A DNA stretch of 64,000 nucleotides from Eukaryota sp. TZLM1-RC (GCA_040285825.1 JAUPSS010000002.1:1054001-1118000); one strand, 5' to 3'. Numbered from the stretch's first letter, positions 4,955 to 64,000 are shown. Program-made: numbers and translations. The notes: a model not told the origin generated them from the letters alone.

Positions 4955-6985
4955 TCACTTTCTCGTCCTTTTTTGTCTCCTCATCCTATCACCAAATATA
5001 TCGTGTTTTGGTTTCGTGTTCCTCCTCTTGACGCCTGCATCATGGAACACTTCCTCGGACTCTTGTTGTGTTAGAGACTGTTCCATTCCAGGTACATTTG
5101 CAGATACCAATAAATCTAAAATTTCATCTGGGTTACTTTTAAAGTCAACATCAGGGAAAAGTTTCAAAATCTTCATCATTGTGACTGTAAGAACCGGTTG
5201 TTCAATTGAATTAACATCACTAGTCAACTTATCAATATTAGGTTGGGGGTATTCAGAATTTGCTTCCAAAAAACAAGTTTGCTCGCCCGTTTCATTTGTG
5301 GTGTAGTACTTTGAAAAATCCCGTTTTTCCTGACTTAATTCTTGAGAAGAATCTTGAAGGAGAAAGACCTCAGGGGCATCTGTTGGCCAGAAATATCCTT
5401 GCTTGGTTCTACAGGCTAGTGGGTAGAGAGGGGCAAGAGAAAAGGAAGAAGTTTGTTTCTTCTCTAATTGCCAAACTCTATCCAAATTACCAAACATTAG
5501 CTCAAAATTAACGTAAGCACTATAGACTTCTCTTGACGGATGACGTGATAGAACACGTTCAAACAAAAGCCTGCAATTACGCTCATCTTTGATTCGAATT
5601 AAAAAATCAGAATAGGCTAATACGAATGAAGATTTATCAGAAAAAAACTTCAATCCCCGTTCAAAAATCTTTTGAGCTGCAGTATCATCATTGTTAAGAC
5701 TTGATTCTAACTGGGCGACTGCCAGGTATACGTGATGATTCACGTAACTTGAGTCCTTGAGAGACCTCACAAATGCTTTTCTACCCCCGTCTTTCCCTGC
5801 AGTCCTTCTTTTAAAGAGTATATACTGTACAAAACCTTCTGGCGATGGATATGATTCTAAAAAGCTTTCAAAAACATTACTAGCAAGAGGCAAATCGTTC
5901 ACCAACTCATAGAAATCAATTCTGGAAAAAACAAACAAAGGATGATGACCTAAAAACTTAGAGCCTCTTTCGTAAACGTGCTTAGCATCTTCAGTTTTAC
6001 CAATAGAGAAAAGATAGTGGGCGTAGCGATGCCAGACCTCGGTAAGCCGGCCAAGACAAATAGTCATTTGATCAAAAGAAAGGATTGTTCTTTTTTTGAC
6101 CCGGTCTTCATCAGTCAAGGGATTTGTGAGCTCAAACTCAATCAACTTTGACCACGCAAGAAACTGATCCCCACTACTCCTTGACTCAGCAGGAACTGAC
6201 AACCTAGACATATCAAGCGACAGCCTCCTGCTTTCAACTTCCTTCAACACCGCTCTTGCTTCCAAGTATTTTGGTTGTACTTCTGCAATGTGTGAGGAAT
6301 GTGTTTGTGGAGAGTGAATATTCTCAAAGGAAACATAGTCTTCCCAGAGAGCATCACTACCTTTGAGGGGAGTAGTGAGGGCTCTGTGATAAACAAATCT
6401 TATGGTGGAAATTTTCTTATTTTCATCAAAGGCTGTGGTGTAATTTCGAGAGTTCAGTAGGCTTATGTATTCTTTATAAAGTACGAGAGAGGAAGGATCC
6501 TCACCAACCTCATTGAGGGAATATTCAAAGGCTAAAGAAGCTTCCTTGAACTGTTCTTCAGAGAGAAAGGTCAGGTCAGGAAAAGTGTCAATATTAGCAT
6601 CATCAGGGGAGAAGGCTCTTGACTGATCACGAGAAACATAACGTACATATAGACGGTAGAGATCTACATCCTTACAAAGAGCGAGAGCTTCGTTAAATCT
6701 TGTGTCTGCAGAGTCAAAGTGTTGAGAGATCAGGTCGATTGAAATTAGCTTCAACCAATAGCGCGGCGTTGTGGGAAAGACAGAAAGAAATCTTTCAAGG
6801 ATGTCGATAGCAAGTTCTTGTGGAAAAGTGTGCAGTGAAAGCAGTAAATGCTTCCATGTAAAAAGAGAAAAAGGGTCTTCTTGAATCTCAGTGAAAGAAT
6901 CTAAAACCGTTGTTGGTGTAGATTTGGGAAACGAACGTTGTAGTATGTGTGCTGTTTCTAAAGGTACTGAAGCATACTCACCCAT
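4955..6985 (-). CDS. CSTF3: Cleavage stimulation factor 77 kDa subunit / Rna14 (HAT repeats)
   Basis: HAT repeats (ERFLSVFPTTPRYW; IRFVYHRALTTPL...LWEDYVSFEN; AQKIFERGLKFF; ERNCRLLFERVL) and C-terminal DIFGDRMR. ATG at 6985. Confidence 0.9.
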   Translation of the reverse strand: MGEYASVPLETAHILQRSFPKSTPTTVLDSFTEIQEDPFSLFTWKHLLLSLHTFPQELAIDILERFLSVFPTTPRYWLKLISIDLISQHFDSADTRFNEALALCKDVDLYRLYVRYVSRDQSRAFSPDDANIDTFPDLTFLSEEQFKEASLAFEYSLNEVGEDPSSLVLYKEYISLLNSRNYTTAFDENKKISTIRFVYHRALTTPLKGSDALWEDYVSFENIHSPQTHSSHIAEVQPKYLEARAVLKEVESRRLSLDMSRLSVPAESRSSGDQFLAWSKLIEFELTNPLTDEDRVKKRTILSFDQMTICLGRLTEVWHRYAHYLFSIGKTEDAKHVYERGSKFLGHHPLFVFSRIDFYELVNDLPLASNVFESFLESYPSPEGFVQYILFKRRTAGKDGGRKAFVRSLKDSSYVNHHVYLAVAQLESSLNNDDTAAQKIFERGLKFFSDKSSFVLAYSDFLIRIKDERNCRLLFERVLSRHPSREVYSAYVNFELMFGNLDRVWQLEKKQTSSFSLAPLYPLACRTKQGYFWPTDAPEVFLLQDSSQELSQEKRDFSKYYTTNETGEQTCFLEANSEYPQPNIDKLTSDVNSIEQPVLTVTMMKILKLFPDVDFKSNPDEILDLLVSANVPGMEQSLTQQESEEVFHDAGVKRRNTKPKHDIFGDRMRRQKRTRK

Positions 6986-15762: not shown

Positions 15763-16210
15763 TTAATAGTGGAAACAGAATGTTTTACTGGGGACTCTAC
15801 ATAGTATAGCATCAAATACAATGTGCAGTATATATAAAACTGCAACACTAAGAAAACAAAGAAACTGAAAAATAGTAAAGTTTGAAACCTCAATCAATGT
15901 TATGTAATAGAAAGCTGCGATTGGGTTCACTTCGAATAAATCCAGAAAATTGTACAACCTGGTAATGAATTTGGTAAGAGAAAAGTAAGAGCTAAAGTGT
16001 TATAGGTCGTAAATCGGCGCTCGCGTGATATCTGAGTTACCTGATAACCGCTGATTGAGACTTTTCCATAGAAATAAGTGCATTACGTAGAGAAGGAAGG
16101 TTGTCATGGGATAGAAGAAGATCGAAGGTGTATGGCATTGATAGGGAGGCGTGAGAAGAGGTGGTTGTTAACAGGTGGGTGCGTTGTTGTGAATTTGAAA
16201 TTAAGCTCAT
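15763..16210 (-). CDS. Small hypothetical membrane protein (putative intron 15959-16040)
   Basis: ORFs 16037-16219 and 15763-15957 join in frame through GTAACT...TTACCAG. Hydrophobic C-terminus. Confidence 0.4.
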
Positions 16211-16297
16211 CAGTTGCAAATCACCAGAGAAAAATGAAAAATGAACCCAAACCTACATTGGTGTAAATCTTTTACCGACTGCAACACATCTATTTGA

Positions 16298-19243
16298 ATG
16301 ATGCCTGATGAGCCCTCGGATTCATTCCACTTTTCCTCGAGGTACATTTTAGCGCTTATACCAACATGGGTAGTCATTGCTTTTTTGGGAGGTCGTCATT
16401 CTTTACTTTTCGTTGGTTTTGGGGTACTTGCCAATCTGCTATCCAGAATCACCAATAATGATATTGCATCTCTGTCATCCAAGTTGATTACACATTTTTG
16501 CTACTTTATGTTTGTGCTGTTACGCTTCATTTCCACTGCTTCCTTCTCTTTTTCCATTATATTCTGGCTTTGTTACATTTCGATCTATTCGACCACGACT
16601 TCTCTTCTTATCTTACTCACTTCTGCTGCTTCATCCCTCTTCCCTCCCTCATTTTCCCAATCCTTCCAGCGTCTACTGTATATCTCAACACTCTTGTCAT
16701 CTCTTCCTGGTGCTCACTTCTTCAATACCCTCTTCTTTGCCCCTCTTATCACCAATACAGCCATCTCGTACTCTCTGTCACTCATCACATCCATCAGCTA
16801 TGTCTTTGCCCTTGTCCTCAACACTGGACAATCTCTGTTAGGCAACACTAAGCTGTGCAAACTCTCTCATTTCCTTTCTACTCTTTCCATTCACCTTCTT
16901 CCCCTCCTGTCAATGCTTGTCAACAACGGATTTAGCATCTACCACGCTGCCTTCCTGCTCTCTCTTGGTGCGTTGCTTTCCTACCTCATAGATCAATCTC
17001 AGACCATTTCTTCCCCTTCTCCCTCCCCAAAGACTCCCTTGGTTAGTGTGGGACATACCATTAGTTCAGCATTTGTCAATGTTAAACTTATCTCGATCGT
17101 TCGGTTTATAATTCCCTTGTCTCTTTCACTTTCCCTTCTTCCTGGTTTTGTGAATCCTGATCATGCTGGACTTCGAGGTCCTTTGGTGTTGCTTTGTTCA
17201 GTGTTTGGTATCCCATTATTGGTTCAATTAGGTAAAATCTACCAAAACTCGGAAGAATTCACAAGAAATGCCAGATTATTGACCCTTCTCGTCTCGGTTT
17301 TGGTCTCCCTTATGGTCTTTGCTTTCTTTGGAGTTGCAACTCCTCTGCCTGCTCTGACTGTTACTATTTTAGGAAGTTTCCTTTTAGGTTATATCTTCTA
17401 TTCCACTACTAAATCTCTATTCCTAAAGACTTTTTCCCAATACCGATTCAAAACCATTTACCTCCTTCTAATCTCAACTTACTCAATTTCTCTTATCCAT
17501 TCCTATCTTACCTTCTCTCACCTCTCTTCAATCCCCCCTGTCTTAGTTTTGGTTTTACCTTTACCTTTGGCTTTAGCAGTTGGAACCCTCGCAGTGTTTT
17601 TGTTGTTAAAAAGTGGGGAAAGTCATTTGACTGATGTTTTCATTCTGTTATTCACCATTGCTCAATCTTTTGTGGAGTGTTTAATTAAAAGTTTACCTCA
17701 TGAACATTCATTATTACCACCACTCTTCATTGTTCTTTCTTCTGCTTTAATTTTGGTAATTTCATGTCACTCGAAGCTGAGTGAACGAACGAAAGCTTCT
17801 ACAAGAGCTTTTATAGTTTCTTTAGCCTATGGGAAGCTAGTCTTGATCATTCCCACCTTTCGACCTGCAGGTGACGTGATTGATTGGTTTTTTAGGGTTT
17901 TATTCCTTTCTATTTCGGTTACTGGTTCACTTTTGGACTATGAAAAAGTCCGTACTTTGTCTGAATTGGTTTTTCAACATGCTTTCTTTGGTTTCCTGTC
18001 GTCTTTTTCTACTTGTTTAATCCTGTTACCCCCATTATTATTTTCCTTGACTGGAGTACAAATTTCGATTCCCTCCTTCTTCCTTTTCCTCTATGCTTTC
18101 ACCATGTTTTACCTCTACATTTCAACCCTCCCTCTCTTTCCTTCCTTTGCAACCTGGGTTCGTTTTGGAGAGGAAGAAGGTAAAGAAGTGATGGCCAGGG
18201 TAAAGAAATTTTGTGCTATTTCTATTGTCTTAGTTTTCTCTGCTCTCTTGTTTTATTATTCTGCTCCTAGGTCTGTATTTTTTGATGAAACTCCCGTCAC
18301 TTTTGGTGGGTTTTTCTATCTCTGCTTGTCAGCTTTGATTATAGTTAATTCAGCATTCTTTGCACCATTGAAGGCTTCATCAATGTCAAAGTTCACCAGT
18401 TTTACTTCTAAATCACACGTCAAATTGATTATTACACTTTTGAATTCTTTATTAAGTTCATTTGCTCTAACCAAATGGACAAGCTTATCTTCGTTTTCCG
18501 ATTACGGAGTATTCTTTTTAATGATGATAACTCTATTTTTTGCTCTATTTAGTTTATTCAATTCGCTGCCTCAACTAAGTAATTTTGTTTTTGTTCCAAT
18601 ACTCTCTGCTGTTTTTGGTTTAACTTTTTCTATTTGCTGTTTCATCATTCCCTTATTCCGTCCTGCTTTGGCAATTTCCTTGCTTAATGTGGTTTTAATT
18701 TCAACATCAATTAGCATTATAGCATGTAAGGCTATTAAACGGAGTTCCCTACCCACAGAATTTACTGAGCCGTTACTTGTCACCAATTCTCTCAATTTGG
18801 GAGTTTTGTGGCTTTGCTTGGTTTATTATATGTCTAAATACTTTGTAGGATTCTCCCCTGAAGTTTTTCTTTCAAGTGTTTTGTTTCTATTTATAGAAAC
18901 TAATAAGTTGACAAGCTCTTTAACCATTATGCTTGCTGGGCTGCCTTTTTCTGCAATTTTTGCTTTATTTTTTGATCCTATTACTGTTGTTTTTCCAACA
19001 ATTTTCTTTTTATTTGGAGTATGTATTATTTATTTTATGGTTTTATTCTTTGTCTTGTTTGGTGATTATAAATTAAATCACTTTCAGTCAATTGGGCTCT
19101 CCATTGTTGTAGTTTTGTTGAGTATTCCTGCAAAATCTATAGTGGTTACTCTCATAGCCCTGGTGACTGTCATTCAACTCGTTTCTAGTGTTGTAATTCA
19201 AACTTATCTGACCACTGGATATGATCGTGTAAGGACTGATTAG
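16298..19243 (+). CDS. Large polytopic membrane protein of unknown function
   Basis: Uninterrupted 981-aa ORF, hydrophobic almost throughout (by eye more than 20 TM-like segments). Confidence 0.8.
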   Translation: MMPDEPSDSFHFSSRYILALIPTWVVIAFLGGRHSLLFVGFGVLANLLSRITNNDIASLSSKLITHFCYFMFVLLRFISTASFSFSIIFWLCYISIYSTTTSLLILLTSAASSLFPPSFSQSFQRLLYISTLLSSLPGAHFFNTLFFAPLITNTAISYSLSLITSISYVFALVLNTGQSLLGNTKLCKLSHFLSTLSIHLLPLLSMLVNNGFSIYHAAFLLSLGALLSYLIDQSQTISSPSPSPKTPLVSVGHTISSAFVNVKLISIVRFIIPLSLSLSLLPGFVNPDHAGLRGPLVLLCSVFGIPLLVQLGKIYQNSEEFTRNARLLTLLVSVLVSLMVFAFFGVATPLPALTVTILGSFLLGYIFYSTTKSLFLKTFSQYRFKTIYLLLISTYSISLIHSYLTFSHLSSIPPVLVLVLPLPLALAVGTLAVFLLLKSGESHLTDVFILLFTIAQSFVECLIKSLPHEHSLLPPLFIVLSSALILVISCHSKLSERTKASTRAFIVSLAYGKLVLIIPTFRPAGDVIDWFFRVLFLSISVTGSLLDYEKVRTLSELVFQHAFFGFLSSFSTCLILLPPLLFSLTGVQISIPSFFLFLYAFTMFYLYISTLPLFPSFATWVRFGEEEGKEVMARVKKFCAISIVLVFSALLFYYSAPRSVFFDETPVTFGGFFYLCLSALIIVNSAFFAPLKASSMSKFTSFTSKSHVKLIITLLNSLLSSFALTKWTSLSSFSDYGVFFLMMITLFFALFSLFNSLPQLSNFVFVPILSAVFGLTFSICCFIIPLFRPALAISLLNVVLISTSISIIACKAIKRSSLPTEFTEPLLVTNSLNLGVLWLCLVYYMSKYFVGFSPEVFLSSVLFLFIETNKLTSSLTIMLAGLPFSAIFALFFDPITVVFPTIFFLFGVCIIYFMVLFFVLFGDYKLNHFQSIGLSIVVVLLSIPAKSIVVTLIALVTVIQLVSSVVIQTYLTTGYDRVRTD

Positions 19244-47285: not shown

Positions 47286-49972
47286 TGTTGCTTTTCGTGC
47301 ACTAAACATAAACAAAAACGAAAGTTTATGGACAGAATATAAGAAATCAAGGAAAAATAAATAAAAACTACAATTTAAACCTACCATGACGTGATCCACC
47401 TTCCTAAAGAGGAAGGTCACGTTTAGCCACAGCTAACACTGCCTTCTCTTTCTTTTTCGGCGGGATTTGGGAGGGTCGGTGGCAAGCTTGATGTACCTAG
47501 AGTACGCGGCAGTGTTCCGAATAGAAGAAACAGGCTGAACAGTGGTGGTCCCATCGGACCAGAGCACGGTGGCGGATTCATCAGTGATATCGATAATAGC
47601 GTCAAGAATCAGCTCACCTGAATCGGCAGCTACATAAGCGTCGAGTATCTCCGGAGGCAACGAGGACAGGCAGGGCTTTACAAGGTGGGTGGCTGTTTTG
47701 AGAGATGAGCCCGAGACAGGGTTCTGAACCAGGAGAGAGCTAGGGAAGAGGAGTTTGAGGACGACATAGGGGCCTACAAAGTGACCGTGGAGTTTGTCTG
47801 GCTTCTCGCGCAGAACAAAACTCGATCATCGGCCTGAGGGCAATATGCAGGTTCAGGCACGTCAGTAGGGAGCAAAACAGGGGATAGGGTTACTGCTTCC
47901 CATGAGGCTAGAAGTGTCTTCGTTAAGGTCAGAAGGTGTTCGATGAACTCGGGTTTGTCTGGAGGGAGAAAGTGTGTGGACAATGAATTCAAAAGCTGGT
48001 TGGGCAATAAACGGGGAGAGGTGTCGGGTCCAAAAATGAGACAATATGGGAATGTGTTCAGGGCCTTTCTTTCCTGAGAATTCAACACCATTTGACACAG
48101 GGGAACATAGTCTGACCAGTTATGGTAGTCAGAGAAATCGAGTAACATTCGGCGGATTACTTGGAGAAAACTACGATGTTGGCGCTCGACCAAGCCATTG
48201 GACTGATGGTAGTGGGGTAGGGATTGGGAATGTTCTATGTTCAAGAATTGGCATAGCAAACTGAATATCTTGTTGGCAAATTCAGGGCCGTTATCAGAGT
48301 GGATTCGACGAGGAGCGCCGAAAACAGAGTAGACTGAGGAAATCAAGGCATTAACGATGGTAGTGACCTTAAGGTCCTTGGTGGGAACAAGGATGCTAAA
48401 TTTAGAAAAAGCATCGACGAAGTGGACTATATACTTATAGCCATAAGTATAGGCTGAGAGCGGACCGATGGAATCACAATGTAAACTCTCAAAAGGGCGA
48501 CGAACAGAATTTAGAGATCCAGTAGAGGAGATCGCGGTCTTGGGGACGGGGGCAGTCTTCTGGCATATACAGGCGTTAACATGGGTTGATAAATCGTTTC
48601 GCATATCGGGCCACTGAAAATCAGATCGTTGGAGGGGCTTCCTACATTGGGCGAAAGGAGGGTGACCGGCTTCGATAGAACCATGGGCCAGTAAGAGAAT
48701 CTCAGAGCGCATGGATGGAAGAATCAGGATCTTTCCAGATTTGGAGAGCTTCAATCCAGACTTAGCATTAATGATGCAGTCTTTAAACAGGGGATCATTA
48801 TCAGGCACTTTCTGTTGGTCCTTAAAGATCTTATTTAAGAAAGCGGCAGCAGGAAAGCTGGAGGGTTTGGCCGGGAGCAGTTCTTGGGCGGAGGAATCTG
48901 ACGAATTGGACGCTGTGATGGCTTATACGATATGAATTTCATCAAAAGAGTCTAAAGAAACGTCGACGGGTTGACCAGAGTCTTCACGAGGAGGGAGGCT
49001 GTCTTTAGGCGACATGGCTTGCTCTTCGAGGAATCGTTCGTGATTATGTGTGAAAGGTTCGGTTTTAAAGATCTCCATCCTAGAGGGCAATTCATATCTG
49101 AGAGACGGCAAGTAGTACCTGGGTTGGTCTTCGGAGAATCCTGGGAGAGCAATAGCGAAGGAACGAGAGGGATGAGACACTCTTTCAAGACGCTTGTCCT
49201 GGAGTATTAAATCTAGTCTTGAATGATGTTGGATTAAACCATCAAAATATAGACGAACCAGATCATGGAAATGAGGACAAATAATTGTGAACTCAGGATC
49301 GGGGTTATCGAAATTGGAGTTAGCAAGGGAAGAGTAATCGAGGGGCTTCAAGTGATAGCGGATAGACCGTTCGCTGGGGTCTATTTGGTGTCCGTAAACA
49401 AGTTCTATTCCTGAGATGGCAAAGGGGCAGGGGGTTAGTTCATTATCGTCATAATGGTAGATTCAGTGGACAACTGGCTTTAACAAGCAGAGAGGAATAT
49501 AGGTGGTTACATCAACACAGGGATTCAGCAAGTACAGCCGGTAGGCAGAGTCCGGGTAAGTGGGTCCTATGGGTATGGGGGCGAAAGGTGGACGGGAGGC
49601 TTTTTTGGTGGACGAGGACTGAGAGTGAGTAGCAGGAGGGTATCTTGTCACATCTGTCATGACATGACATGACATACGTTGCGCGTAAACCTTCTATGCT
49701 TCTACATAACGGGAAACGGACTCTCGACCGGTATGACTCAAGTACGGAGCAATCAGGTTCGCGGGGTTCTGGGCGGGGACATGAGGCAGGACGGATTCCT
49801 TACAGGCTCCAGTAATTATTGTTGCTTTTCGTGCACTAAACATAAACAAAAACGGAAGTTTATGGACAGAATAAAAGAAATCAAGGAAAAATAAATAAAA
49901 ACTACAATTTAAACCTACGATGACGTGATCCACCTTCCTAAAGAGGAAGGTCACGTTTAGCCACAGCTAACA
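47286..49972 (-). mobile_element. Ty3/gypsy-type LTR retrotransposon lacking RT and RNase H (2687 bp)
   Basis: 153-bp LTRs (TG...CA) at 47286-47438 and 49820-49972 with 3 mismatches, TSD GTAT and PPT GAAAAAGAAAGAGAAGGCAG. Confidence 0.95.
47433..48808 (-). pseudogene. Retroviral-type integrase with chromodomain-like C-terminus (frameshift near 47800)
   Basis: HGSIEAGH...CICQK (HHCC), LHCDSIGPL, IHSDNGPEF and QSNGLVER (DDE), then LILDAIIDI...VLWSDGTTTVQP. Confidence 0.9.
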
Positions 49973-50740
49973 GTATAGGAAGAATTGTTGACAAAACGTA
50001 CTTTCAATTTTTAAAGGTGCTGTACTTGTTGTCTTCTGCTTTGTTATCTCTTGGTCGGTTTTATGAAAGATAAACTCCCATTCAATTGTTTTTGGCTGAT
50101 CTGGGGTATGAAAATATAGAATGTTATGTTTGTTGTTTAGTGTTTCGTTAGAATAAATAAATTGGTAAAAAAGTATTTCCAAAACTTATGATTTCCTCGT
50201 TGAACTACAACCCTTAGTAAAATTAAATCAGAATTAATGGGACTAAATTCATTGCTGTTCTTCATTATGACGAAGACTAACAAAAAGAAAAGCTTTTGCT
50301 GTTCTGGATTTGATCCAGAATGCAGCAAGTACCGAATGTTGAGTAATAGTAAATTATTGGTCAACAGATACGATCAAATTTGATTGATGAAATGTGACAT
50401 TGTAAAGTAGAAGATTCAAAGTGTTTTTTCCATTATTAGAATTGATCAATTGTGAGCTAAAATCCTCTTCAACATATCTTCTACAGATAATAGAAAAATG
50501 AATAATAACGCACTAAACAAGTTTTCTGTAATGTGGCCGTGGAATTGATGAGTGAATGATATAGTTGCTGATTGAATTAGTGCTTTGTTGATTATCTAAC
50601 CACCTGTTTTTTTTAAAATTATCATTTTGTTGCCCTCTACCTGATAAATTAATTTTCTGTGTTTTAGATTGTTTTGTTTTGTTTTGATTCTTCGTAGAAA
50701 ATAAAATTAGTTTAATTTTATTTAAATGAATTAAATTTTT

Positions 50741-53651: not shown

Positions 53652-56600
53652 TTTAAATTTAAATTTTATTTTTTCTTATTTTTTTTTCCTTCCTCTACAT
53701 ATAACCGTTTAACTTACAACCTGGCTGAACCGCGATCATTGCTTCTATTCTTTCTTGTTGATGCCTGAATCAGTTTCTGATTCTAATGGAGTCAAAAGAA
53801 AGAACGATAGACAACAAAATGCTCAAGACGTCCTTTCCACCTCTCCTCCTCATCCTCTTCTCTCTTCATTTTTGGACAAAAAAAATTCTGATCAAGAATT
53901 TTTAGAAAATCACGATGAAAACAAAGTTTGTTCAAAAACAAAGCCACGCTCCTACAGATGCTCAAAGTGTCGACAACAAGGACATAATGCTCGAACATGC
54001 CCCAATGTTGGAAAAAATAATGTGGCAAATTCTGAAACAAAATGTAAAAGAAAATTTATTAGAAGAAAAGAGTCTAAGGTAGAACCCATAAATGATGCTC
54101 CACAAGTTGTTGCAAAACCAGTTAGCAATCGATTGAAGCACAAAGTTTGCAACAATTGTGGTATTTCTTTTAGAAAAAATGCAAAAGGAAAAACTTCTGA
54201 TCGATGCTTGAAATGCCGCATAGTTGATAACTACCATCCTCCCATAAGAATACCTCAAGAAATTCATCCGACCAAATGCAATGAATTTGCTTTCGTTTTT
54301 CAAAGATTTTTGGATCAATTATGTAAAGGAAAGTATGCTATCAATATTATTTGGGAATTTTTTGGTTCTTTTTGTCCTCCTTTTGAACAAAATTTTGTAA
54401 ATAATTCCGAAGATTTAACTAATATAGCACCGAGAAATCAATCATCCGAGAAATTAAGTAAAATTTTTGAAGACAAATGCTTTGACAACAAATGGTCCAA
54501 GGCTTTGTCAGCTTTAAGTCCCGGAGTTAAAGCACCCAACAATGAAAATACAATAGATAAACTAAAAATACTTCATCCTTATGAAGACCCTATAATGGAT
54601 CAAAATTTTTATGGCACATACTGGGAAAATTATCCATTGATGCCATCAGAAGTTTTTTCGGTGATCAAAAAGAGACCACGTGGTAAGTCTGCCGGACTTT
54701 CTGGTATTACTATTGATCATGTAAAAGCCGTGATTATTTCTTCAGAAGATTGTCTTGGTTTATTGACCAAATTTTTCAACCAAATATTATCTGGTCAACT
54801 CAAATACCCAGAAGAATTAAGAAGTTCTCGTTTGACTGCACTTGTCAAAAATTCAAAAATGGATGTTCGTCCTATTGCAATCTCTGAGAGCTTACACAAT
54901 ATTTTTTCTGCGTGTTGCTTAAGCAGGTTTAACGAGAAAGCAAAAAAAATTTTATTACCCTTTCAATATGGTATAAATACTACAGATGGAGTCTCTTCAG
55001 CGATATTTGCTACTGATGTTTTATTTCGCCAAAATGAATCCAATGTTTGTATGTCATTGGATTTTAGTAATGCTTTCAATTCACTAAGTCGTCGCAGTAT
55101 CCATGGTGCTCTATTGCAATATATGCCGGAATTAATACCGTATTTTCAATCAACATATTGCACATATTCTAATTTACATTTTGGTAACAACATTTTGAGT
55201 TCATCAAGTGGTGTAAAGCAAGGAGGTCCGTTAGGGCCTCTTTTGTTTTGTTTGGCCATTCATCCTATTTTACTGCAAATTCAAGAGATGTTTCCTTCAC
55301 TAAAAATGATTGCATATATGGATGATGTTGTGCTTATTGGTGATTTAAATATTGTGAAACAAGCAACTGTATGTTTTAAAGAATTATTTACCAAAATTGG
55401 TCTCCGACTTGATTTACTTAAATGTGTTTTGTTATCGAATTCTCCAGTTTCCACAATAGTTGATGGTATTGAAATTCAAGGCAAATTATATTCAATTGAT
55501 GCTATTCGTCATTTGGGTTCGTTTTTAGGAAATAATGATGAAATTACCAAAAAATTGTTTGAAAAGTTGAACTCAATTTCTGACAAAATTGACCGAATGA
55601 TGAATTTAGATATAAAAAACACATCAAATTTACCATTATAAGACTGTGTTTTAGTTCCAATTTTAATCATATATTTCGATCTACAAATCCTCTCGTCACT
55701 AGACCTTTGGCTCAGAAATTTAATGAGTTACGTGCAAAAGTTTTGTCTCAATTACTGGGATGTAAAATGTTTCAAATTCCAGATCATGCTTACCTTACTC
55801 CACATTATGGCGGTTTAGGGTGGACGAAGGCTTCTATTCTTACATCGTGTGCTTTTGTTGGTGGATGCAGAAATGCAATCTTTGAGTTTTCCGAAAGATT
55901 TGCAGATTGGGAAGATTTATTGATGACAACGCAAAGTTCCACTGTTTTTGCATTAAATGAAGAAATTTCAAAAATTGATGTAGAAAAATGGGGTCGATGT
56001 TTTCCTCAATCATTCAATGGCAATAATCCAGAAAAAAATGTTTTAAATTTGAAGTACACTCTTCGAACATTACAGAAACGATTGACTGGAATGTATGAAA
56101 AAGATCTTTATAATAATATATGCAGGTCGGCTGTTTTAAATCAAGATCTTCACTCATTGTTATTGGAAAAGGGTGTTTGTGAAAACAAGTCGTCAGATTC
56201 TTCACTTTTTGTAACTATTGTACCACAAAGATTTGGATTGTGTGCCACTAATGAAGCATTTGTAACAAAAATGAGATTATATTTGAACATCCTCATTAAT
56301 CAATTATTATCAAAAGAAAAATGTATTTGTTCGAATTCACCTCAACTCACTTTGCGCCATGCTCTGAATTGCTCTAAATTGATAACTTATCGTTCTTCAT
56401 TACATGATGCTGTTAGAGACACTGTTTTCAATATGGCACAAACTGCAAGGATATCGTGTATCAAAGAGCCTCTGCTGAAGGAAACACTTTCTCTGAATAA
56501 TTTTGGTTCTGATGATAGAGGTGATGTATACTGTGATTGGATTGATAATTCTGAAGCTATTGTTGACTTTGTCTCATGTAATGTTGCAAATGATACTTTG

Positions 56601-57016
56601 GTTCACAGAAGAAAACTTAATCCTGTGGCTGCTCTGGATTTTAAAGCAAAAGAGAAACATAGAAAATATGATAAAGATATTGAAGAGGCTAATGTCGATA
56701 GAAATACACAGCTGGTTTTTATTGCTTTCCCATTTTCGATAAATGGCAGATTATCAGTTGAAGCAGAAACTTTTTTGAATGACTTCCAAAAAATGGTGCA
56801 AGAAAAAACAATGAGAAGATTTGATATATTTTTATGGCGTTCACGGATTCAATTTGCCATTATTAATAGATTACCACGGTTTTTCAATCGAATAAGAGAA
56901 GCTTTAGCTAGACAGCAAGCAGATCAAGATTTTGTAGATGAAATCTTGGTTCAAAGATGGTCGTCCCATTAGTATTGAGTTAATTTAATTAAGTGTGCAA
57001 ATTCAATAAATATAAA
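53652..57016 (+). mobile_element. Essentially full-length family A CRE/R2-like non-LTR retrotransposon (one frameshift near 55615)
   Basis: CCHC knuckle CSKCRQQGHNARTC, CxxC...CxxC, RT (LDFSNAFNS, GVKQG, YMDD), C-terminal Zn finger and REL. Possible TSD ttaaatcaaa at 53642-53651 and 57017-57026. Confidence 0.92.
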
Positions 57017-57089: not shown

Positions 57090-58813
57090 ATGGTTCTAAG
57101 TTCAAGGAAATTGTCTACCATTGAGGACCCTCTATGGTTCAAGGATGCTGTTTTCTATGAACTTTATGTACGTGCCTTCTCCGACTCTAACGCTTCTGGG
57201 TCGGGTGACTTTATGGGTCTTACTTCTAAACTTGCTTACTTAAAATGGCTTGGAGTAGACGTTATTTGGATTCTACCTCATTACCCCTCTCCTCTGTTCG
57301 ATGATGGTTACGATGTCGCTGATTACACAAATGTCCATCCTGATTATGGTACTCTTTCTGATTTTGACAGATTCATTTCTGCTGCACATGATTTTGGTCT
57401 CAAGGTGCTAGTTGATTTTGTCGTAAACCACACATCGGACCAGCATCCTTGGTTTCAAGCTGCTCGATCCGACAGAAACTCCCCCTACAGAGACTATTAC
57501 GTTTGGTCTGATACTGACTCAAAGTACAAGGATGTTCGCATAATCTTTTGCGACACTGAATCCTCCAATTGGACATATGATGAGATTGCAGGACAATACT
57601 ATTGGCATCGATTCTTTAGCTCGCAACCAGACCTCAACTATGATAACCCCCAAGTAAAAGAGGAAATCTTTAATGCCATCAGGTTTTGGTGTAGGAAGGG
57701 AATTGATGGTTTTCGTGTGGGTTTGTTTTTAATTCTTTTTTTACCTCAGATGCTGTCCCCTATCTCATTCAAAGGGAAGGTACAAGCTGCGAGAACTTAC
57801 CAGAAACACACTCCATTTTAAAAGAGATGAGGGCCATGATTGATAAGGAGTTCCCCAATGTGTTTTTGCTTTGCGAGGCTAACATGATGCCTGAAGATGT
57901 CGTTCAATACTTTGGCACTCCGGAAGAACCTGAATTCCATTCTGGTTTTCATTTCCCAGTAATGCCTCGAATCTTCATGAGCCTAGTTCGGGGTGAATGT
58001 TCTGCAATTAAGGACATTCTTCACCGGACACCTGCCATACCCTCCAATACCCAGTGGATGCTCTTTCTGAGGAACCATGATGAGTTAACGTTGGAGATGG
58101 TGACTCCAGAAGAGAGGGAGTGGATGTGGTCAGTATTGGCTGGCGGACCGAGAGAGAAACAGAATTTAGGAATTAGGAGACGTTTGGCTTCAATATGTGA
58201 CTACGACAACCGAAAGATTCTAATGTTAAATGCACTTTTGTTCTCTCTTCCTGGCAGCCCTATTATTTACTATGGTGATGAAATTGGGATGGGCGACAAC
58301 TTGTTCCTAAGGGATCGAGATGGTCAGAGGTTGCCTATGCAATGGGATCCCAGATTGTCTTTGGCTGGATTTTCCCAATCACGAAGACCTTATGCAAACC
58401 CAGTTGGAGGGGGACCAGGTTCACCTGTCCATGCTTCTGTAGCAGTCCAACAACTTAATGAAAATTCTTTACTTCACAAGATGAAGAATTTGATAGCAAC
58501 AAGGAAACAGAGTAGGGCCTTTGGAAGGGGAAGTTATTTCGTTGCAGACTGCGCTGATTCAGTTTTTGCCATTATTCGTGTTTATGGCGACGAAATGCTA
58601 CTTTGCTGTTGTAACATGACTTCTTTGTCTCAAGTCGTTTCAATATCATTCAAAACAGAACATCTTCCCGCAAATAGAACTTTTGAAAGGGTGGTTTTCA
58701 CTGATATGCTTTCTCCCTTTTATGTCAATGCTGATTTCGATAAAAATAGTGGTAGTTTGATTGTAGATATTAGTTTGTGTGAATATGGGTTTATGTGGCT
58801 TCGATTGGAATAG
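57090..58813 (+). CDS. treS: Trehalose synthase / maltose alpha-D-glucosyltransferase (GH13), 29-nt intron 57721-57749
   Basis: [44 protein letters not shown], spliced [38 protein letters not shown]. Confidence 0.95.
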
Positions 58814-58970: not shown

Positions 58971-61900
58971 CTATTCGAGATATTCTTCCAAAGACCACAG
59001 AGTTTTTAAACTTCTTGTCCTGCTCAAGAGAGAACTTCCAGTGGCTGTGGTTTCTGGTTCACTTGGTGTCATTGGAGGTACTGCAATATTAGGAAAATTT
59101 CGCCTTGATGCAAGGGAAGCTGATGAACTGCTAGGAGAAGCCATGTTAATTGATTGTTCAACAGTAGGTAAGTTTGCCATGGAGCCTCGTTGGGCATGAA
59201 TCCTTCCTGAGTGAAGGTTTGCCATTGACCTTGTGTTGACTAGTGGAAGATTGGCCATAGAGTGAGTCGTATTGGGTAAACTAGCCATAGACGGACCCCC
59301 TGCCAAAGGAGGCAGATCATCTGGCAAATGAATCTCCACTCCCTTCTTCACCTCATCCATGGACCATATCTTCGTCCACATCTCAGGATGCATATTCAAA
59401 GAAAGGTAATTGTGGTAATAAGGTACCTTGAGATTAGGATCTTCACTAGAAGGCATCCTTTTTTTGGGAAGGTATTCAAAGAGATTATAAAAAAGAGCAA
59501 AAACTCTAAATAGCGAAAGAAGCAACCTGTAGAAAGGAAAAAGTAAGACAATGATGAGAGGACTTTGGAGGTCTTTTCGTCGACGCAATTTCACATAATT
59601 AAAGGCAAAAAACACAATATACTGAAGTAATATTACTCTGAAATAAATCAAACCAAGAGCTGCCAAATCAGCCATTAAAAAGAAATAAAGAATGATTAAT
59701 AAATGAAAATAGTCTCTCAGAATAGTAAGCATTTCATAGAGGTAAAAAGGCTTGAGAATAATCGTGTTAATGTTCCAATATCGCACAAAATGCTCCAAGT
59801 ACTTAAAAAAGAACCTATGAGCACATGCATCCTGAGGTAAGCTAAACATTTTGGTGGAAAGAGACATACCCAAGATTTGACTCTCTGGTTAAAGAGGGAT
59901 TTTTCGTCTATACAGTGGTCTCCAAATAAATCTTCTCCCAAATGGAAAAGGTCTTCTGGTGCTTGGGTGAGTGCGGGGGTAGCAGCTAAGCATATCAATC
60001 TCTTCATTTTGCCAGTAACACATCGCTCCCTCAAGATAAACCCCATCTGAGCATCTTCACCATGGAAAGCACTGTGGTTAAAAACTGAGTTGTTCAACAA
60101 ACCTGTTATGACATTCCAATACAAAATTCAACTCTTTCTTTTTCCAGATAGAAATTGCGCCACTGAGGTGAAGATAAACAAAGAAAAACATACTGAGGGT
60201 AAGCACAAGTCCCAAACTTTTCTTGAACAAGTTTTAGTAATCCGCTGAGTAAATATTCCATATCCTGGAAAGCAACAAGGAACGATCTCCTCCTCCAAGA
60301 ATTTCGGCATTGAGGTCTATTCATGTCAGCTCTAATGGTGATAACTCCTCCCGCGACGTCATCTTCTGCTAACCGATGGGTCTGCCAGCTCATATCCGCT
60401 GGAATCATGACGTCATCATCCATAATCACGACATATTCTATTTCTGGACGATAAGCTAAAATGTTTTTGTTGACATAATGTAAGCAAAACGTCTTATTAC
60501 CTGTGGGAATGTAGACATAATTGACAGTTCTTCCCCAAGCTTTAACTTTTTTAATGACTTCAATGGTACCATCATTGGGGAAAGGAGTAGGTCTGTTAGC
60601 ATTGTGACAGACATAAACATTACCATTTCCAACACTTCGACTAGCTAATCTTAGGGTTCTTTCAAAGTCAATAGCTTTTTGTTTCTTTAACTCCACCAAA
60701 TCTTCTCTTGACGGAGGTTTAATAAAGTTGTTTTTACAATTATTTAAAATCATATCGGGATCTCTACCTGCAGAGATATGGCTTGCTATAAGAATGGCAA
60801 CATTAGAATTATCATCATTGAACCCCTTTACTACCCTGTGTTCTGGCCAAGAAACACTAAAGAAGGCGAGAATGATGAGAAAATGCTCCAAGCCAAGGAT
60901 GAACAAGGTGATATAAATACTACCAAGTGAATGAAAAAACTTGGTGGCAACAAGAAAGTCTCGGTAAAAGAAAAATAAAAGAATAAACAAAACAAACGCA
61001 AAAACCATCCAAAAAACAATTTCTACCGTGTCTCTTGAACCAGGAGTATATTGTTTCTTTAAGCTTTCAAAGGCTTCAAGCAATCCAATCCAAGTATCAT
61101 TACGGAATACCCTTGCAGGGGGTTCTTCTGGCTGGTAACGTTCCTTGGCAGCAAGAGTTTCTTCGTCTTGGATTAATTCAAACCAATTGTCTGGTAGAGA
61201 GTGGTATTTTTCATTTGAAGTGTTTATTGAACCTTTGAAAAATCCTTTAAATCGTTCAAAAAGAAGTGCCAGAGTCAAAAAGAATATAAATATTGAAATC
61301 AAAAGAAAATCCAGAACATCAAAGCGATCCAAGTCTTCATCATACGCAAAGTACTCAATGCTTATAAAGTTGCAGACAGAATCGTGGGGAGAAGTTATTT
61401 CGACATTGAAACCGAGGAAGTCTACATGTCTGGCCTCTACTTTGATTGCAAATGGTGAATTACCCGTATCGATTCCAGTAATATATACAAAAACTTCAGG
61501 GATTCGTTGAAATTCGAAATTGAAAAAAATTCTTTTTGTAAAAACAAAATTATCCTCAAGGTGAAGTTCCCAGTTACTTGTGTTATTGACTCCAAAAGCC
61601 AACGAACTTCTATCAAAAACATTATACCTCAAGAAAGAAGAATTAAATGCCAACAAAGCGTATCTAATTTGCCTTAAATGTCCCATAGAGATAAAAGATG
61701 TTTCAGCAGAAACCGAATCGTTATATAAGGGATGAGGAACAACTTCATAGTTTGTTTCTATTGAATGGGCTTCTGTGAAGGGATCATCGTAATAGAATCT
61801 TAAACCTCTAAAGGAAAAGAAAACTTCAATATCATCAAAGTATTCGTGATTCATAGGTAGGGTAAAATCACCCAGCCACTCAGTTCCAAAACCCAAGTCA

Positions 61901-64000
61901 TTTGAGTCCAACTGATTGATGTCGGCATCTACAATGGCACTCAGCCCAACTAGTGAAGGATCATCAAAGCAGAGAGTACCAACTGCAAACCAAGAAAGAG
62001 TAATTGAATCTAGGTAAGATTCATCAAAGATGCTGATTCGAATGGTAAAATAATCCAGTTGAGGTCTATTCACCATAATGTCAACCCCAATCTGCTGTGA
62101 AGTCTCAATACCGGCCAAAGAGACGAAAACATGAGGACTTGACTCAAAGGCATTGTTATAGTATATGTCTGTATCAAAAATACTACCCCCACCTCCTCTA
62201 TGAAGTCTCCAAGCCGGTTCCCTGGTGTTGAATTGAATGACGCCCGAGTCTATTTGAAATGCTTCTGGGCAGAGAACGGGGTTAATTACATCAGAAATAG
62301 AGGGTGGTTGAATATAAAAGAAAATAAAAACAAATAAAGCGATAAATGAACTGTAAAAAACAAACGCCTTGACTTTTTTCCAAGTAAAAAAAGACCATCT
62401 ATAAGGTCTTCCTGGCTGAGGTGGTTGGTCGTCGTTGGTCTCTTGATTTTGGTTGACTTCTGATTCATCATTTCCGTCCTGATCAGTACCTACATCAGTT
62501 TCGGTAACATAAACACAATCAGAAGGTAGTTCCACGTCGATAGAGTTAGATTCGCCTTCATCACCATCATTTAATTGATCATTTGATTGATCAGTTTCCG
62601 ACTGACGACCACCAGACCCAAACACCTTTTCCCCCACAAGTTTCAAATCATTAACATCCTTGACACTTACTCGGGACGGTAATTGCTTCACATCATCCAC
62701 CTCCTCACCACTACTATCCATGCTAGCTGTTTCCCCGCTACTGTTTTCGTCTTCTGTGGAGTGGTATTCGAGATCAAGACCAGTAAACTTGGAAAGTTCT
62801 GCTGTGAATTCGGGTTGAGAAACTTTCTGTAAATGACCATTTTTTGGTTCTTTTTCTTTTGTCTTCTCTTGCTCTCCTTCACTCTCAAGTTCAGATTCCT
62901 CCGTGTCTCCAAGTTTTTCAAGCATGGGATCTGTATCGCCTTGGAATTTCTGCCCCCTAATCAAACCTATTCTTCTGAAAAATAAACAAGTGTTGAGGGA
63001 ATCGTGGACATCTTTGGGGTTTAAAGAAAGATTTGCAATCATTTGAATTCTAGGGCAATATTGTAGAATAAACCTTAGAACGGAGGTGAATAAGCAGTTC
63101 CTATAAGGAATGTGGGTCTTTTTGGAGGTAATTGCATTTAAAACCCCTTCCAAGAAGAACAGACTCTTATTGATCTTTACAGATTCATTAAAAAAGGGAG
63201 AATTTTTTCCCGACTCCTTATCAAAAGCCGCCAAGTCTACCAAAACTAACTTTGAATGGGTTTGTAATTGTCTGGAAACTAAATGAATTGAGAAAATACC
63301 ATGCCCTCTTGTAGACAACATATTAGATTTAGTTTTTCTTATAGTTCTAAATTCAGTACCCCTTGCCAGTTTTACCATTGCATCTCTTAGATCATCAACC
63401 TTGACTTGTCTCAGTCCTGGAATGATGCTGATTTGCTGGTTGGCAGATGCAGACATCACTAGTGAAGTGTTTAATTGAACAGGGCTTTTCTCACCTCTAT
63501 TGTTCTCTTCAATAGAAAGTAAGTCTGAAACACCCTCGCCATGAACTTCGAAATAAGACAAATGAACTTCTTGATCATCAGAAAGATTGTTGAAAATACA
63601 CTTTAAGCACCGTGGAATTAACCCCATAGTTTCGGTGGTGTTTTCAAGAGGTGATCCAAATAAGGTGTAACTTTTCCCTGCACCTGATCCTCCGTGATTC
63701 ATTATAGTTGTTGATTTATTTGCAAATAAGGCTGAAATACTTGGAACTGCAACTTCCTTGAATATAGCCAAGTTATCTTTTGTAAAAACTCTGGTAAAGG
63801 GAAAAGACCACGTTTCCTTCGTGTTGTTGACGCCTTGTTGTGTATTGGTTCTAGGGATCTTCATAATGATGGAATCTGTTGCGTCATCAAGTTCAATGGG
63901 AGACTGGTCGGGATAAGGCTTGAGTCGGCAGAAAACCGCTATTGGTTTTATTGTTTTCCTTTGTCTAGTTGGACTAGAAAGTTCAACTTCATCTCTGTCG
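58971..64000 (-). CDS. Kinesin motor - H-type lectin x3 - GT2 processive glycosyltransferase fusion (5' end outside the window; introns 60163-60193, 60103-60132, 59832-59869)
   Basis: IAVFCRLKP, GGSGAGKSYT, LSYFEVHGE, HIPYRNCLFT; TM; lectin-like repeats; TMs; MDDD, spliced YPHGAISIWKRK, GED, QRVKSW; C-terminal TMs. Confidence 0.85.

Follow-up and report, generated by a model that had tools for sequence, protein, structure and literature searches.

Can a kinesin head, a lectin ectodomain and a polysaccharide synthase belong to one protein, and what would such a protein do in the cell? The question is raised by a minus-strand gene at the end of a 64,000-nucleotide stretch of the genome of Eukaryota sp. 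TZLM1-RC (GCA_040285825.1 JAUPSS010000002.1:1054001-1118000), which is called the window here. Fornicata have their sister group in flagellates of the Skoliomonas/Barthelona type. Strain TZLM1-RC, the type of Skoliomonas litria, is an anaerobic metamonad of soda lakes and a relative of the barthelonids (PMC11603281). We found that the gene encodes a putative motor-fused processive synthase that is new in three respects, namely its class of motor, the lectin ectodomain inserted between motor and enzyme, and the uncharacterised family of glycosyltransferases of type 2 (GT2) to which its catalytic part belongs. In GenBank the proteins with this kinesin-lectin-synthase composition are labelled as hypothetical proteins.

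The gene is intact, with its stop side at 58971 and a 5' part that runs past the window end at 64000. The list of open reading frames (ORFs) contains a 1252-codon frame at 60106-63864 (minus strand), and two shorter frames overlap its 3' end and reach the stop at 58971. Translation of 63865-63999 in the same frame stays open up to the window edge and includes the first kinesin strand, IAVFCRLKP; the uninterrupted frame has at least 1297 codons. By homology search the gene product was found to be the database protein P0001 (1733 amino acids, 100% identity), which served as the full-length product sequence. Its first ~91 residues and the start codon lie outside the window. The kinesin head, the linker, the lectins and half of the catalytic domain are all in this single ORF, in the order kinesin head, acidic linker, membrane helix, H-type lectin region, three helices and glycosyltransferase domain of the GT-A fold, and the remainder follows across three GT..AG introns that were located by eye in the DNA. 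The intron bodies are short and rich in C and T, with a 3' end of the type A-C-C-x-C-A-G. P0001 confirms them, as it reads ...CAYPHGAISIWKK...NSAFHGEDAQ...NQRVKSWDACAHRFFF... and spans exactly the three junctions (CAYP-H-GAISIWKK, CHN-S-AFHGEDAQ and QRVKSW-DACAHRFFF). From the 5' to the 3' end of the gene, the features are as follows.

62938-63945, minus strand: kinesin-like motor domain (P0001 ~110-445; Pfam PF00225, solved relatives, motifs, substitution rates)
62377-62937, minus strand: short conserved neck-like segment, then acidic, poorly conserved linker (P0001 ~446-632; alignment)
62302-62364, minus strand: predicted transmembrane helix 1, preceded by basic residues on the cytosolic side (P0001 ~637-657; hydropathy)
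61960-62271, minus strand: H-type lectin domain 1, between two invariant cysteines (P0001 668-771; Pfam PF09458, local profile)
61582-61956, minus strand: middle ectodomain module (P0001 773-897; no Pfam match)
61336-61581, minus strand: H-type lectin domain 2 (P0001 ~898-979, by piecewise scan 891-979; Pfam PF09458)
61252-61314, minus strand: predicted transmembrane helix 2, then basic cytosolic loop (P0001 ~987-1007; hydropathy)
60850-61026, minus strand: predicted transmembrane helices 3 and 4, leading to the catalytic domain (P0001 ~1083-1141; hydropathy, AlphaFold helices 10-36 and 40-67)
60194-60840, minus strand: first part of the GT-A domain at the end of exon 1, with VCHNAN, GNKT, MDDD (60423-60412, DDD at 60420-60412) and QDMEY
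60163-60193, minus strand: intron 1, 31 nt, GT..AG, phase 2 (same position in the paralogue and in strain TZLM3-RCL)
60103-60162, minus strand: exon 2, encoding (H)GAISIWKKKELNFVLECHN (HGA..W nearly invariant in the family)
60072-60102, minus strand: intron 2, 31 nt, GT..AG (unchanged position in the paralogue; a few codons away in TZLM3-RCL)
59870-60071, minus strand: exon 3, with the catalytic-base motif GED (60061-60053) and QRVKSW (59887-59870)
59832-59869, minus strand: intron 3, 38 nt, GT..AG (DNA, P0001, paralogue)
59493-59831, minus strand: start of exon 4, with interface helices and three long C-terminal membrane helices, the putative polymer channel (P0001 1448-1560; AlphaFold helices 367-498, hydropathy)
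58971-59492, minus strand: C-terminal tail with a conserved EYLPKKRMPSxEDPNLKVPY segment, then low-complexity sequence rich in Ser, Met and Ala (P0001 1561-1733); stop codon at 58973-58971

The fusion is real, independent of any intron call. A paralogue on another contig of assembly GCA_040285825.1 (L001) has a single 1376-codon ORF from the kinesin to the glycosyltransferase, and its three introns lie where those of the window gene do, the orthologue of TZLM3-RCL (L004) has a head-to-glycosyltransferase ORF of 1320 codons, and protein P0004 from GEM-RC1 shows the complete kinesin-lectin-synthase architecture. Chance is no issue for an open frame of 3.9 kb in DNA of 37% GC that holds four profile-supported domains and is conserved unbroken both in a paralogue and in a second species. 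An artefact of annotation or assembly, by which two neighbouring genes were joined, could find support in a second GEM-RC1 copy that is annotated as a 550-amino-acid kinesin and the 1064-amino-acid protein P0005. However, this copy (L003:3323-9101) has several frame breaks, with five overlapping or adjacent frames annotated as two genes, and its split falls inside the kinesin domain, as P0005 starts within the last helix of that domain and the kinesin gene lies 26 nt upstream, which marks it as a broken copy. With unbroken head-to-glycosyltransferase ORFs in three independent assemblies as well as in a paralogue, we regard an artefact as extremely unlikely. The sequence-only reading had described one open frame from the kinesin motifs to MDDD and three tiny introns that join GAISIW, GED and QRVKSW to C-terminal membrane helices, and both descriptions hold, the latter by the junctions in P0001 and by hydropathy; the two separate genes or the misassembly that it had named as refuting are opposed by the unbroken frames of the TZLM1-RC gene, its paralogue and TZLM3-RCL.

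P0005 was also considered as a headless, two-gene state of the system, and this was rejected given the broken frames and the split inside the kinesin domain; the locus is a broken or decaying paralogue, or else a badly polished, indel-rich stretch of the assembly. Two further GEM-RC1 proteins, P0169 and P0170, carry the same divergent head with a DLAA switch II, one as a stand-alone head of 459 amino acids and the other as a head with an H-type lectin (745 amino acids), and are probably truncated models of further fusion genes. In the TZLM3-RCL orthologue the third intron (L004:9265-9300, GTATGT...CTAATCGTAT, 28 nt) ends in AT and not in AG, at the usual fixed distance past a CTAAT branch-like motif, which is either a base error or a non-canonical acceptor whose choice depends on distance. 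In the annotation this intron is translated through to a stop, leaving the protein P0003 short and the C-terminal helices in the next ORF.

The identity of the catalytic part was the next question. Among Pfam models for GT2 enzymes, only the generic PF13641, PF13632 and PF00535 matched P0001 or its relatives, with PF13641 (Glyco_tranf_2_3) giving E 0.017 for P0001, 6e-8 for P0003 and 9e-6 for P0004. No match among PDB sequences was obtained by phmmer with exon 1 or with a six-sequence glycosyltransferase profile. An exhaustive HMMER search with the glycosyltransferase region of six relatives recovered 529 representatives with E values of 1e-3 or lower; 377 reached 1e-10 or lower, and 61 of the representatives were used for the family alignment and profile. 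The alignment has the signature DNGN(S), GNKT, DDDV, QDxEY, PHGAISxW, GEDxxMG and QRVxSW, and residues D1285-D1287, E1339, D1386, Q1442, R1443 and W1447 are invariant in all 61 sequences. The catalytic base motif ED corresponds to E1385-D1386, with Glu in 51 and Asp in ten of the sequences at position 1385, and the Ser of QRVKSW is present in 59. This profile had a sole match in the PDB, yeast chitin synthase 1 (Chs1, 8k3p; E 2e-5), to which it aligned in order with QD.EY on QNFEYK, HGAIS on PGAFS, GED on AED and, with a one-residue gap, QRVxSW on QRRR-W. A downstream WGT-type motif was not seen in this alignment; no specific search for it was made.

An AlphaFold model of P0001 residues 1073-1608 based on the 61-sequence alignment (a six-sequence model with a predicted local distance difference test score, pLDDT, of 51 was discarded) reached a pLDDT of 87 and a predicted template modelling score of 0.88, with the strand and helix order of a GT-A domain. 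Foldseek placed Chlorella virus and Xenopus hyaluronan synthases (HAS) first, followed by yeast, Candida and Phytophthora chitin synthases and bacterial BcsA (E 1e-10 to 1e-6), with the two HAS, yeast Chs1 and BcsA at 1e-10 to 1e-7. With VIA, Chlorella virus HAS gave Z 24.7 over 371 aligned residues at a root-mean-square deviation (rmsd) of 3.2 (model residues 44-494), ahead of Xenopus HAS1 (22), yeast Chs1 (21.8), BcsA (~20), plant CesA (18-19) and soluble GT-A enzymes (~15). The superpositions on HAS, Chs1 and BcsA extend over ~350-380 residues, including the membrane part and the helices on either side of the GT-A core. As modelled, the glycosyltransferase part is built like the GT2 synthases that are integrated in the membrane and form a channel, and the processive-synthase type that had been proposed for it gains support from the fold (VIA Z 20-24.7) and from the DDD, ED and QRxxSW columns. 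Its sequence relates it distantly to the chitin synthases, among which we do not file it because no chitin-synthase model of Pfam matches P0001 or its relatives (E up to 0.1-1).

The enzyme could instead transfer sugars to a glycolipid or a short oligosaccharide, like archaeal PcManGT or the dolichol-phosphate sugar transferases, with lectins that bind something unrelated. PcManGT is not known to make long polymers, and the fold by itself is no proof of a long polymer because PcManGT scores as high as HAS with VIA (Z 23.1). The generic GT2 match of P0001 is weak and stays under the Pfam gathering score (15.5 against 27 bits), the first Asp of the GT-A domain is His in P0001 (VCHNAN) and in 18 of the 61 sequences, and QRVKSW is one residue longer than the canonical QxxRW. 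The likeness of QRVKSW to QxxRW, as earlier proposed, was therefore kept in one part, its alignment to QRRR-W of Chs1, and not in the other, since the spacing is non-canonical. Against such a transferase, ~370 residues including the interface and C-terminal helices superpose on HAS, Chs1, BcsA and CesA, the single PDB match at the sequence level is Chs1 with QxxEY, G-A-x-S, ED and QRxxW in order, and the Q, R and W of the motif never vary in the family. We consider a non-polymerising enzyme very improbable.

H-type lectins are a family that binds galactose or N-acetylgalactosamine (GalNAc). The Pfam H_lectin model matches the ORF in two stretches (E 4.5e-19), and when the ectodomain was scanned piecewise PF09458 gave 34.3 bits (E 2.6e-8) for the first domain and 49.6 bits (E 4.5e-13) for the second, at a cut-off of 24. 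By sequence two H-type lectin domains are certain. A profile of 12 repeats out of six proteins matched Helix pomatia agglutinin (HPA, 4e-6), discoidin-1 (6e-4), discoidin-2 and coral SLL-2 (4e-3). The middle module (~125 residues) has no Pfam H-lectin signal and aligns to the repeats with an hhalign E of 0.46; the corresponding module of the paralogues P0010/P0012 matches the lectin profile at E 4.5e-5, and a degenerate third repeat is plausible. Of the triple H-type lectin that had been claimed, two domains thus stand, and the third shows no lectin signal in the sequence of P0001. In discoidins the sugar pocket lies between neighbouring domains of the trimer and contains two aromatics six positions apart (W235/Y241 in DscA), and in HPA we take W83/H84/Y89 to be the pocket residues. 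The repeat consensus of our family has Leu/Glu/Glu where HPA has these three, meaning that the known pocket aromatics are not kept. A GalNAc specificity read from the family name was rejected, as the pocket residues are not conserved.

Hydropathy indicates seven membrane helices, of which the first follows the acidic linker and the second the lectins; the others frame the glycosyltransferase domain, two ahead of it and three behind. Basic residues flank the cytosolic sides of helices 1 and 2, and two invariant ectodomain cysteines surround lectin 1. A cytosolic head, together with this number of helices, would therefore place the lectins outside and the glycosyltransferase domain in the cytosol again; in the predicted topology, head and active site share the cytosol, and the lectins face the cell exterior or the lumen.

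What kind of kinesin is the head? The Pfam model PF00225 matches at E 1.8e-53 in the ORF and ~1e-53 in P0001 (182 bits against a cut-off of 29.3) and covers profile positions 23-324 of 327. The P-loop GGSGAGKS and switch I NMLSTRGH are both kept in orthologues, and the RLKP motif, INKSL in alpha4 and HIPYRN in L12/alpha5 (HIPYRNC in P0001) are also retained; the tubulin-facing INKSL and HIPYRN are among the best-conserved stretches of the head. The nearest solved motors are Chlamydomonas KLP1/KIF9 (7n61; 1e-30, 110 bits) and kinesin-1 (1goj; 8e-29, 104 bits), which are similar over the whole head at low identity and have DLAGSE where the heads of our family have DLAA(F/P/A). Searched against a word-indexed protein database, the head found only seven Skoliomonas heads at E <=1e-20, and no kinesin family could be assigned to it from this search. 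Switch II of P0001 reads VDLAAFD in place of DLAGSE; its Gly is replaced by Ala in all seven heads (P0001-P0004 and P0169-P0171, from three Skoliomonas species), and the Glu position is occupied by D, D, E, I, Q, K and I.

The head is not decaying. Compared with the paralogue, the ratio of non-synonymous to synonymous substitution rates (dN/dS) was 0.02 in the glycosyltransferase domain and higher in the head (0.14), the ectodomain (0.12) and the segment from transmembrane helix 2 to 4 (0.16), so that all measured parts are under purifying selection. The acidic linker is only 28% identical between these recent paralogues, with saturated substitutions. The synonymous rate (dS) between the two TZLM1-RC paralogues is uneven, at ~0.32 in the glycosyltransferase domain (60194-60840 compared with L001) and ~1.0 in the kinesin head, and gene conversion of the 3' half or a strong codon constraint could account for this.

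A working motor that carries the protein in secretory or encystation vesicles to the surface, where alone the synthase becomes active, would agree with this selection on the head, with the retained P-loop, switch I, RxKP motif and alpha4/L12/alpha5, and with the short conserved neck-like segment after alpha6; oligomerised lectin modules or the synthase could bring two or more heads together. The changes in switch II speak against it, as does the segment behind the head, in which no coiled coil was found but just an acidic low-complexity linker. The nucleotide-free state of kinesin is the one that binds microtubules strongly. In human kinesin-1, the G234A head releases adenosine diphosphate rapidly without microtubules, crystallises nucleotide-free and serves as a nucleotide-free model (bioRxiv 10.1101/2024.09.19.613825). 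In Ustilago, the myosin head of the chitin synthase Mcs1 prolongs the stay of vesicles at the site of exocytosis, and transport is performed by kinesin-1 and myosin-5 (PMC3252574). The head of Mcs1 is thus a tether, and that of P0001 likewise looks catalytically compromised. Because of the switch II changes, the missing coiled coil and the precedent of Mcs1, a tether is the more likely role for the P0001 head, and a walking motor seems to us unlikely.

The relatives show how the head was combined with the rest. In a maximum-likelihood tree of the glycosyltransferase region, the lectin-bearing proteins form one clade (100/99) that is confined to Skoliomonas and Barthelona. Within it the kinesin-headed genes group together (86/88), with P0001/P0002 and P0004/P0005 as species-specific duplicates, and are sister (94/93) to P0006. 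P0006, from the same TZLM1-RC genome (L002:4001-8752), has the same body of membrane helices, H-type lectins and GT2 domain, and the nucleotide-binding domain at its head is of the Hsp70 type instead of a kinesin (E 3e-48 to Pfam HSP70, covering only profile positions 32-370); GEM-RC1 encodes the same Hsp70-headed form (P0068). Two genes adjoining P0006 are likewise Hsp70-like, one of them with VWA. In Barthelona sp. PCE the lectin-synthase gene (P0009) is intronless and has an unrelated, divergent gene upstream, and thus no head. The N-terminal ~500 residues of the lectin-synthase paralogues P0007 and P0008 had no match in the PDB and no similarity to each other. The wider GT2 family includes Barthelona, Stygiella, Phalansterium, Telonema and many metagenome contigs, with no functionally named member. 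By local phmmer, a kinesin within the 150 best representatives of the family was found in Skoliomonas proteins only, and in the large members (2-3 thousand residues) that were examined by domain search no extra domains were recognised. A profile search of the word-indexed database gave mostly metagenome proteins, from which neither taxonomy nor function could be read. Upstream of the kinesin-headed paralogue, whose start is at 6001 of its locus, lie a small Cas12f/TnpB-like (Fanzor-type) gene and a MULE transposase-like gene (L001:3748-5788), the latter stopping 213 nt short of the paralogue ATG.

Taken together, our reading is that the kinesin head tethers a membrane synthase to microtubules and that the lectins hold the product outside, which we judge to be somewhat more probable than its opposite. 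The protein, as predicted, crosses the membrane with seven helices and starts in the cytosol with the kinesin-like head, which a long acidic leash joins to the first helix. An ectodomain outside the cell or in the lumen, with two H-type lectin modules and the middle module, leads to the second helix and a short cytosolic loop. Next comes a unit like that of HAS and chitin synthase, in which two helices precede the GT-A domain (DDD, GED, QRVKSW) in the cytosol, with interface helices and three C-terminal helices after it. Like HAS, chitin synthase and BcsA, the enzyme is predicted to polymerise a sugar supplied as its uridine diphosphate conjugate and to pass the chain outward via its own channel, where the lectin modules at the exit may bind the nascent chain or the wall matrix. 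The head could act as a nucleotide-sensitive microtubule tether, with P-loop, switch I and tubulin-facing parts kept, Ala for the Gly of switch II and a Glu position that is not fixed. Such a tether would fix the synthase, or the vesicles that carry it, to microtubules, and polymer would be deposited at defined places. A link to a wall or cyst polymer may be suspected, and the double-walled, plugged cyst of Skoliomonas is the obvious candidate product; a role in cyst walls is attractive because strain TZLM3-RCL forms double-walled cysts with a plug (PMC11603281).

Beside the features of the catalytic domain and of the lectin pockets described above, three points weigh against this reading. Cysts were reported from TZLM3-RCL only, and not from TZLM1-RC (PMC11603281). 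An internal start may yield a separate lectin-synthase product. The main caution is the Hsp70-headed sister, whose head is no cytoskeleton binder; it suggests that the body may need a module binding adenosine triphosphate as such, so that microtubule attachment may not be what the heads have in common. The head would then be a nucleotide-binding module for regulation or assembly that gates or clusters the synthase independently of microtubules and is interchangeable with an Hsp70-type ATPase, in line with the Hsp70 domain standing precisely at the place of the kinesin in P0006 and P0068, with the sister position of P0006 in the tree and with the degenerate catalytic site of the kinesin. However, the conservation of INKSL and HIPYRN would be unexpected if microtubule binding had been lost, and kinesin heads that act away from tubulin are not known. 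We find a module of this kind improbable and keep a microtubule tether as the preferred role.

How does the protein compare with known systems? The sequence-only reading had drawn an analogy with the myosin-fused chitin synthases of fungi, and the analogy is apt, as both join an N-terminal cytoskeletal motor head and a membrane-integrated processive GT2 enzyme in one polypeptide. In P0001, however, the head is a kinesin for microtubules and not a myosin for actin, head and synthase are separated by a membrane helix plus a lectin domain outside the cell, the GT2 part comes from a different, uncharacterised protist family, and the host is a metamonad and not an opisthokont. The classification of chitin synthases lists myosin, cytochrome b5 and DEK-C as added domains (PMC5122149). 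By Pfam, P0001 has none of these class V/VII features, that is, no myosin head (PF00063), no cytochrome b5-like domain and no DEK-C domain; it appears to resemble the motor-domain chitin synthases in outline without being a member. Compared with chitin synthases, QRxxW is one residue longer and EDR is changed to EDA in P0001, while yeast Chs1 is the only solved protein that its family profile matches. Class I HAS of Chlorella virus and Xenopus are the best structural matches (Z 22-24.7, ~370 residues, rmsd 3.2-3.5) and have the same build, in which two N-terminal helices, to which helices 3 and 4 of P0001 correspond, are combined with a GT-A domain, interface helices and helices at the C-terminus, but they are 13-14% identical to P0001 with no match at the sequence level, have QxxRW where P0001 has QRVKSW, and possess neither the head nor the lectins nor the long tail. 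The known H-type lectins that the repeats match by profile (HPA, Dictyostelium discoidins, SLL-2) are trimers, whereas the domains of P0001 stand in tandem in one chain that is anchored in the membrane on both sides.

In plants, the cellulose synthase of the plasma membrane is linked to cortical microtubules via a separate adaptor, CSI1/POM2, and the polymer is thereby laid down along the cytoskeleton. This is also a link between a processive GT2 enzyme and microtubules, but in P0001 the predicted microtubule module is part of the synthase. Full-text searches for kinesin together with chitin synthase, fused motor or H-type lectin retrieved only separate kinesins that move chitin synthase vesicles, and kinesins, lectins and glycosyltransferases all go unmentioned in the paper on the Skoliomonas genome. 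The three-part architecture, which had gone unrecognised in the sequence-only reading, has likewise no paper on a kinesin-fused synthase in these literature searches.

Some other features of the window were noted. A bacterial-type trehalose synthase (TreS, maltose alpha-D-glucosyltransferase) at 57090-58813 (plus strand) is convergent with the synthase gene and lies 158 nt from its stop. Its ORF halves match TIGR02456 at E 8e-102 and 6e-91, and the gene is interrupted by a short gap at ~57822-57826, around which ~25 profile positions are absent. A 421-codon ORF without an NCBIfam match at 55707-56972 (plus strand) may be part of a mobile element. The composition has an outlier at 48001-50000, with a GC content of 0.46 and a GC skew of +0.26, in a window of otherwise 32-39% GC, and another was recorded at 16001-18000 (GC 0.41, AT skew -0.28).

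In Giardia, the beta-1,3-GalNAc 'cyst wall synthase' is an enzyme activity that is still without a gene (PMC13315228). The lectin-bearing GT2 clade might be the cyst-wall or surface polysaccharide synthase of its lineage, wired to microtubules by kinesin in Skoliomonas, and the wider family (529 representatives with the signature DNGN / DDD / QDxEY / HGAxS / GED / QRVxSW) could include or indicate the missing Giardia enzyme; we consider this quite unlikely.

The motor-fused polysaccharide synthases known so far are all myosin-headed, in fungi and molluscs. If our reading is true, a deep-branching anaerobic protist independently evolved a link between synthase and cytoskeleton that uses microtubules, and P0001 would offer a compact system for studying how the site of polymer deposition is set by a cytoskeletal anchor. 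The kinesin and Hsp70-type heads on sister genes amount to a natural domain exchange, in which one lectin-synthase body carries different cytosolic modules of the nucleoside triphosphatase type. Finally, a sizeable GT2 family of protists, distantly akin to the chitin and hyaluronan synthases, becomes a candidate source of novel wall and cyst polymers.

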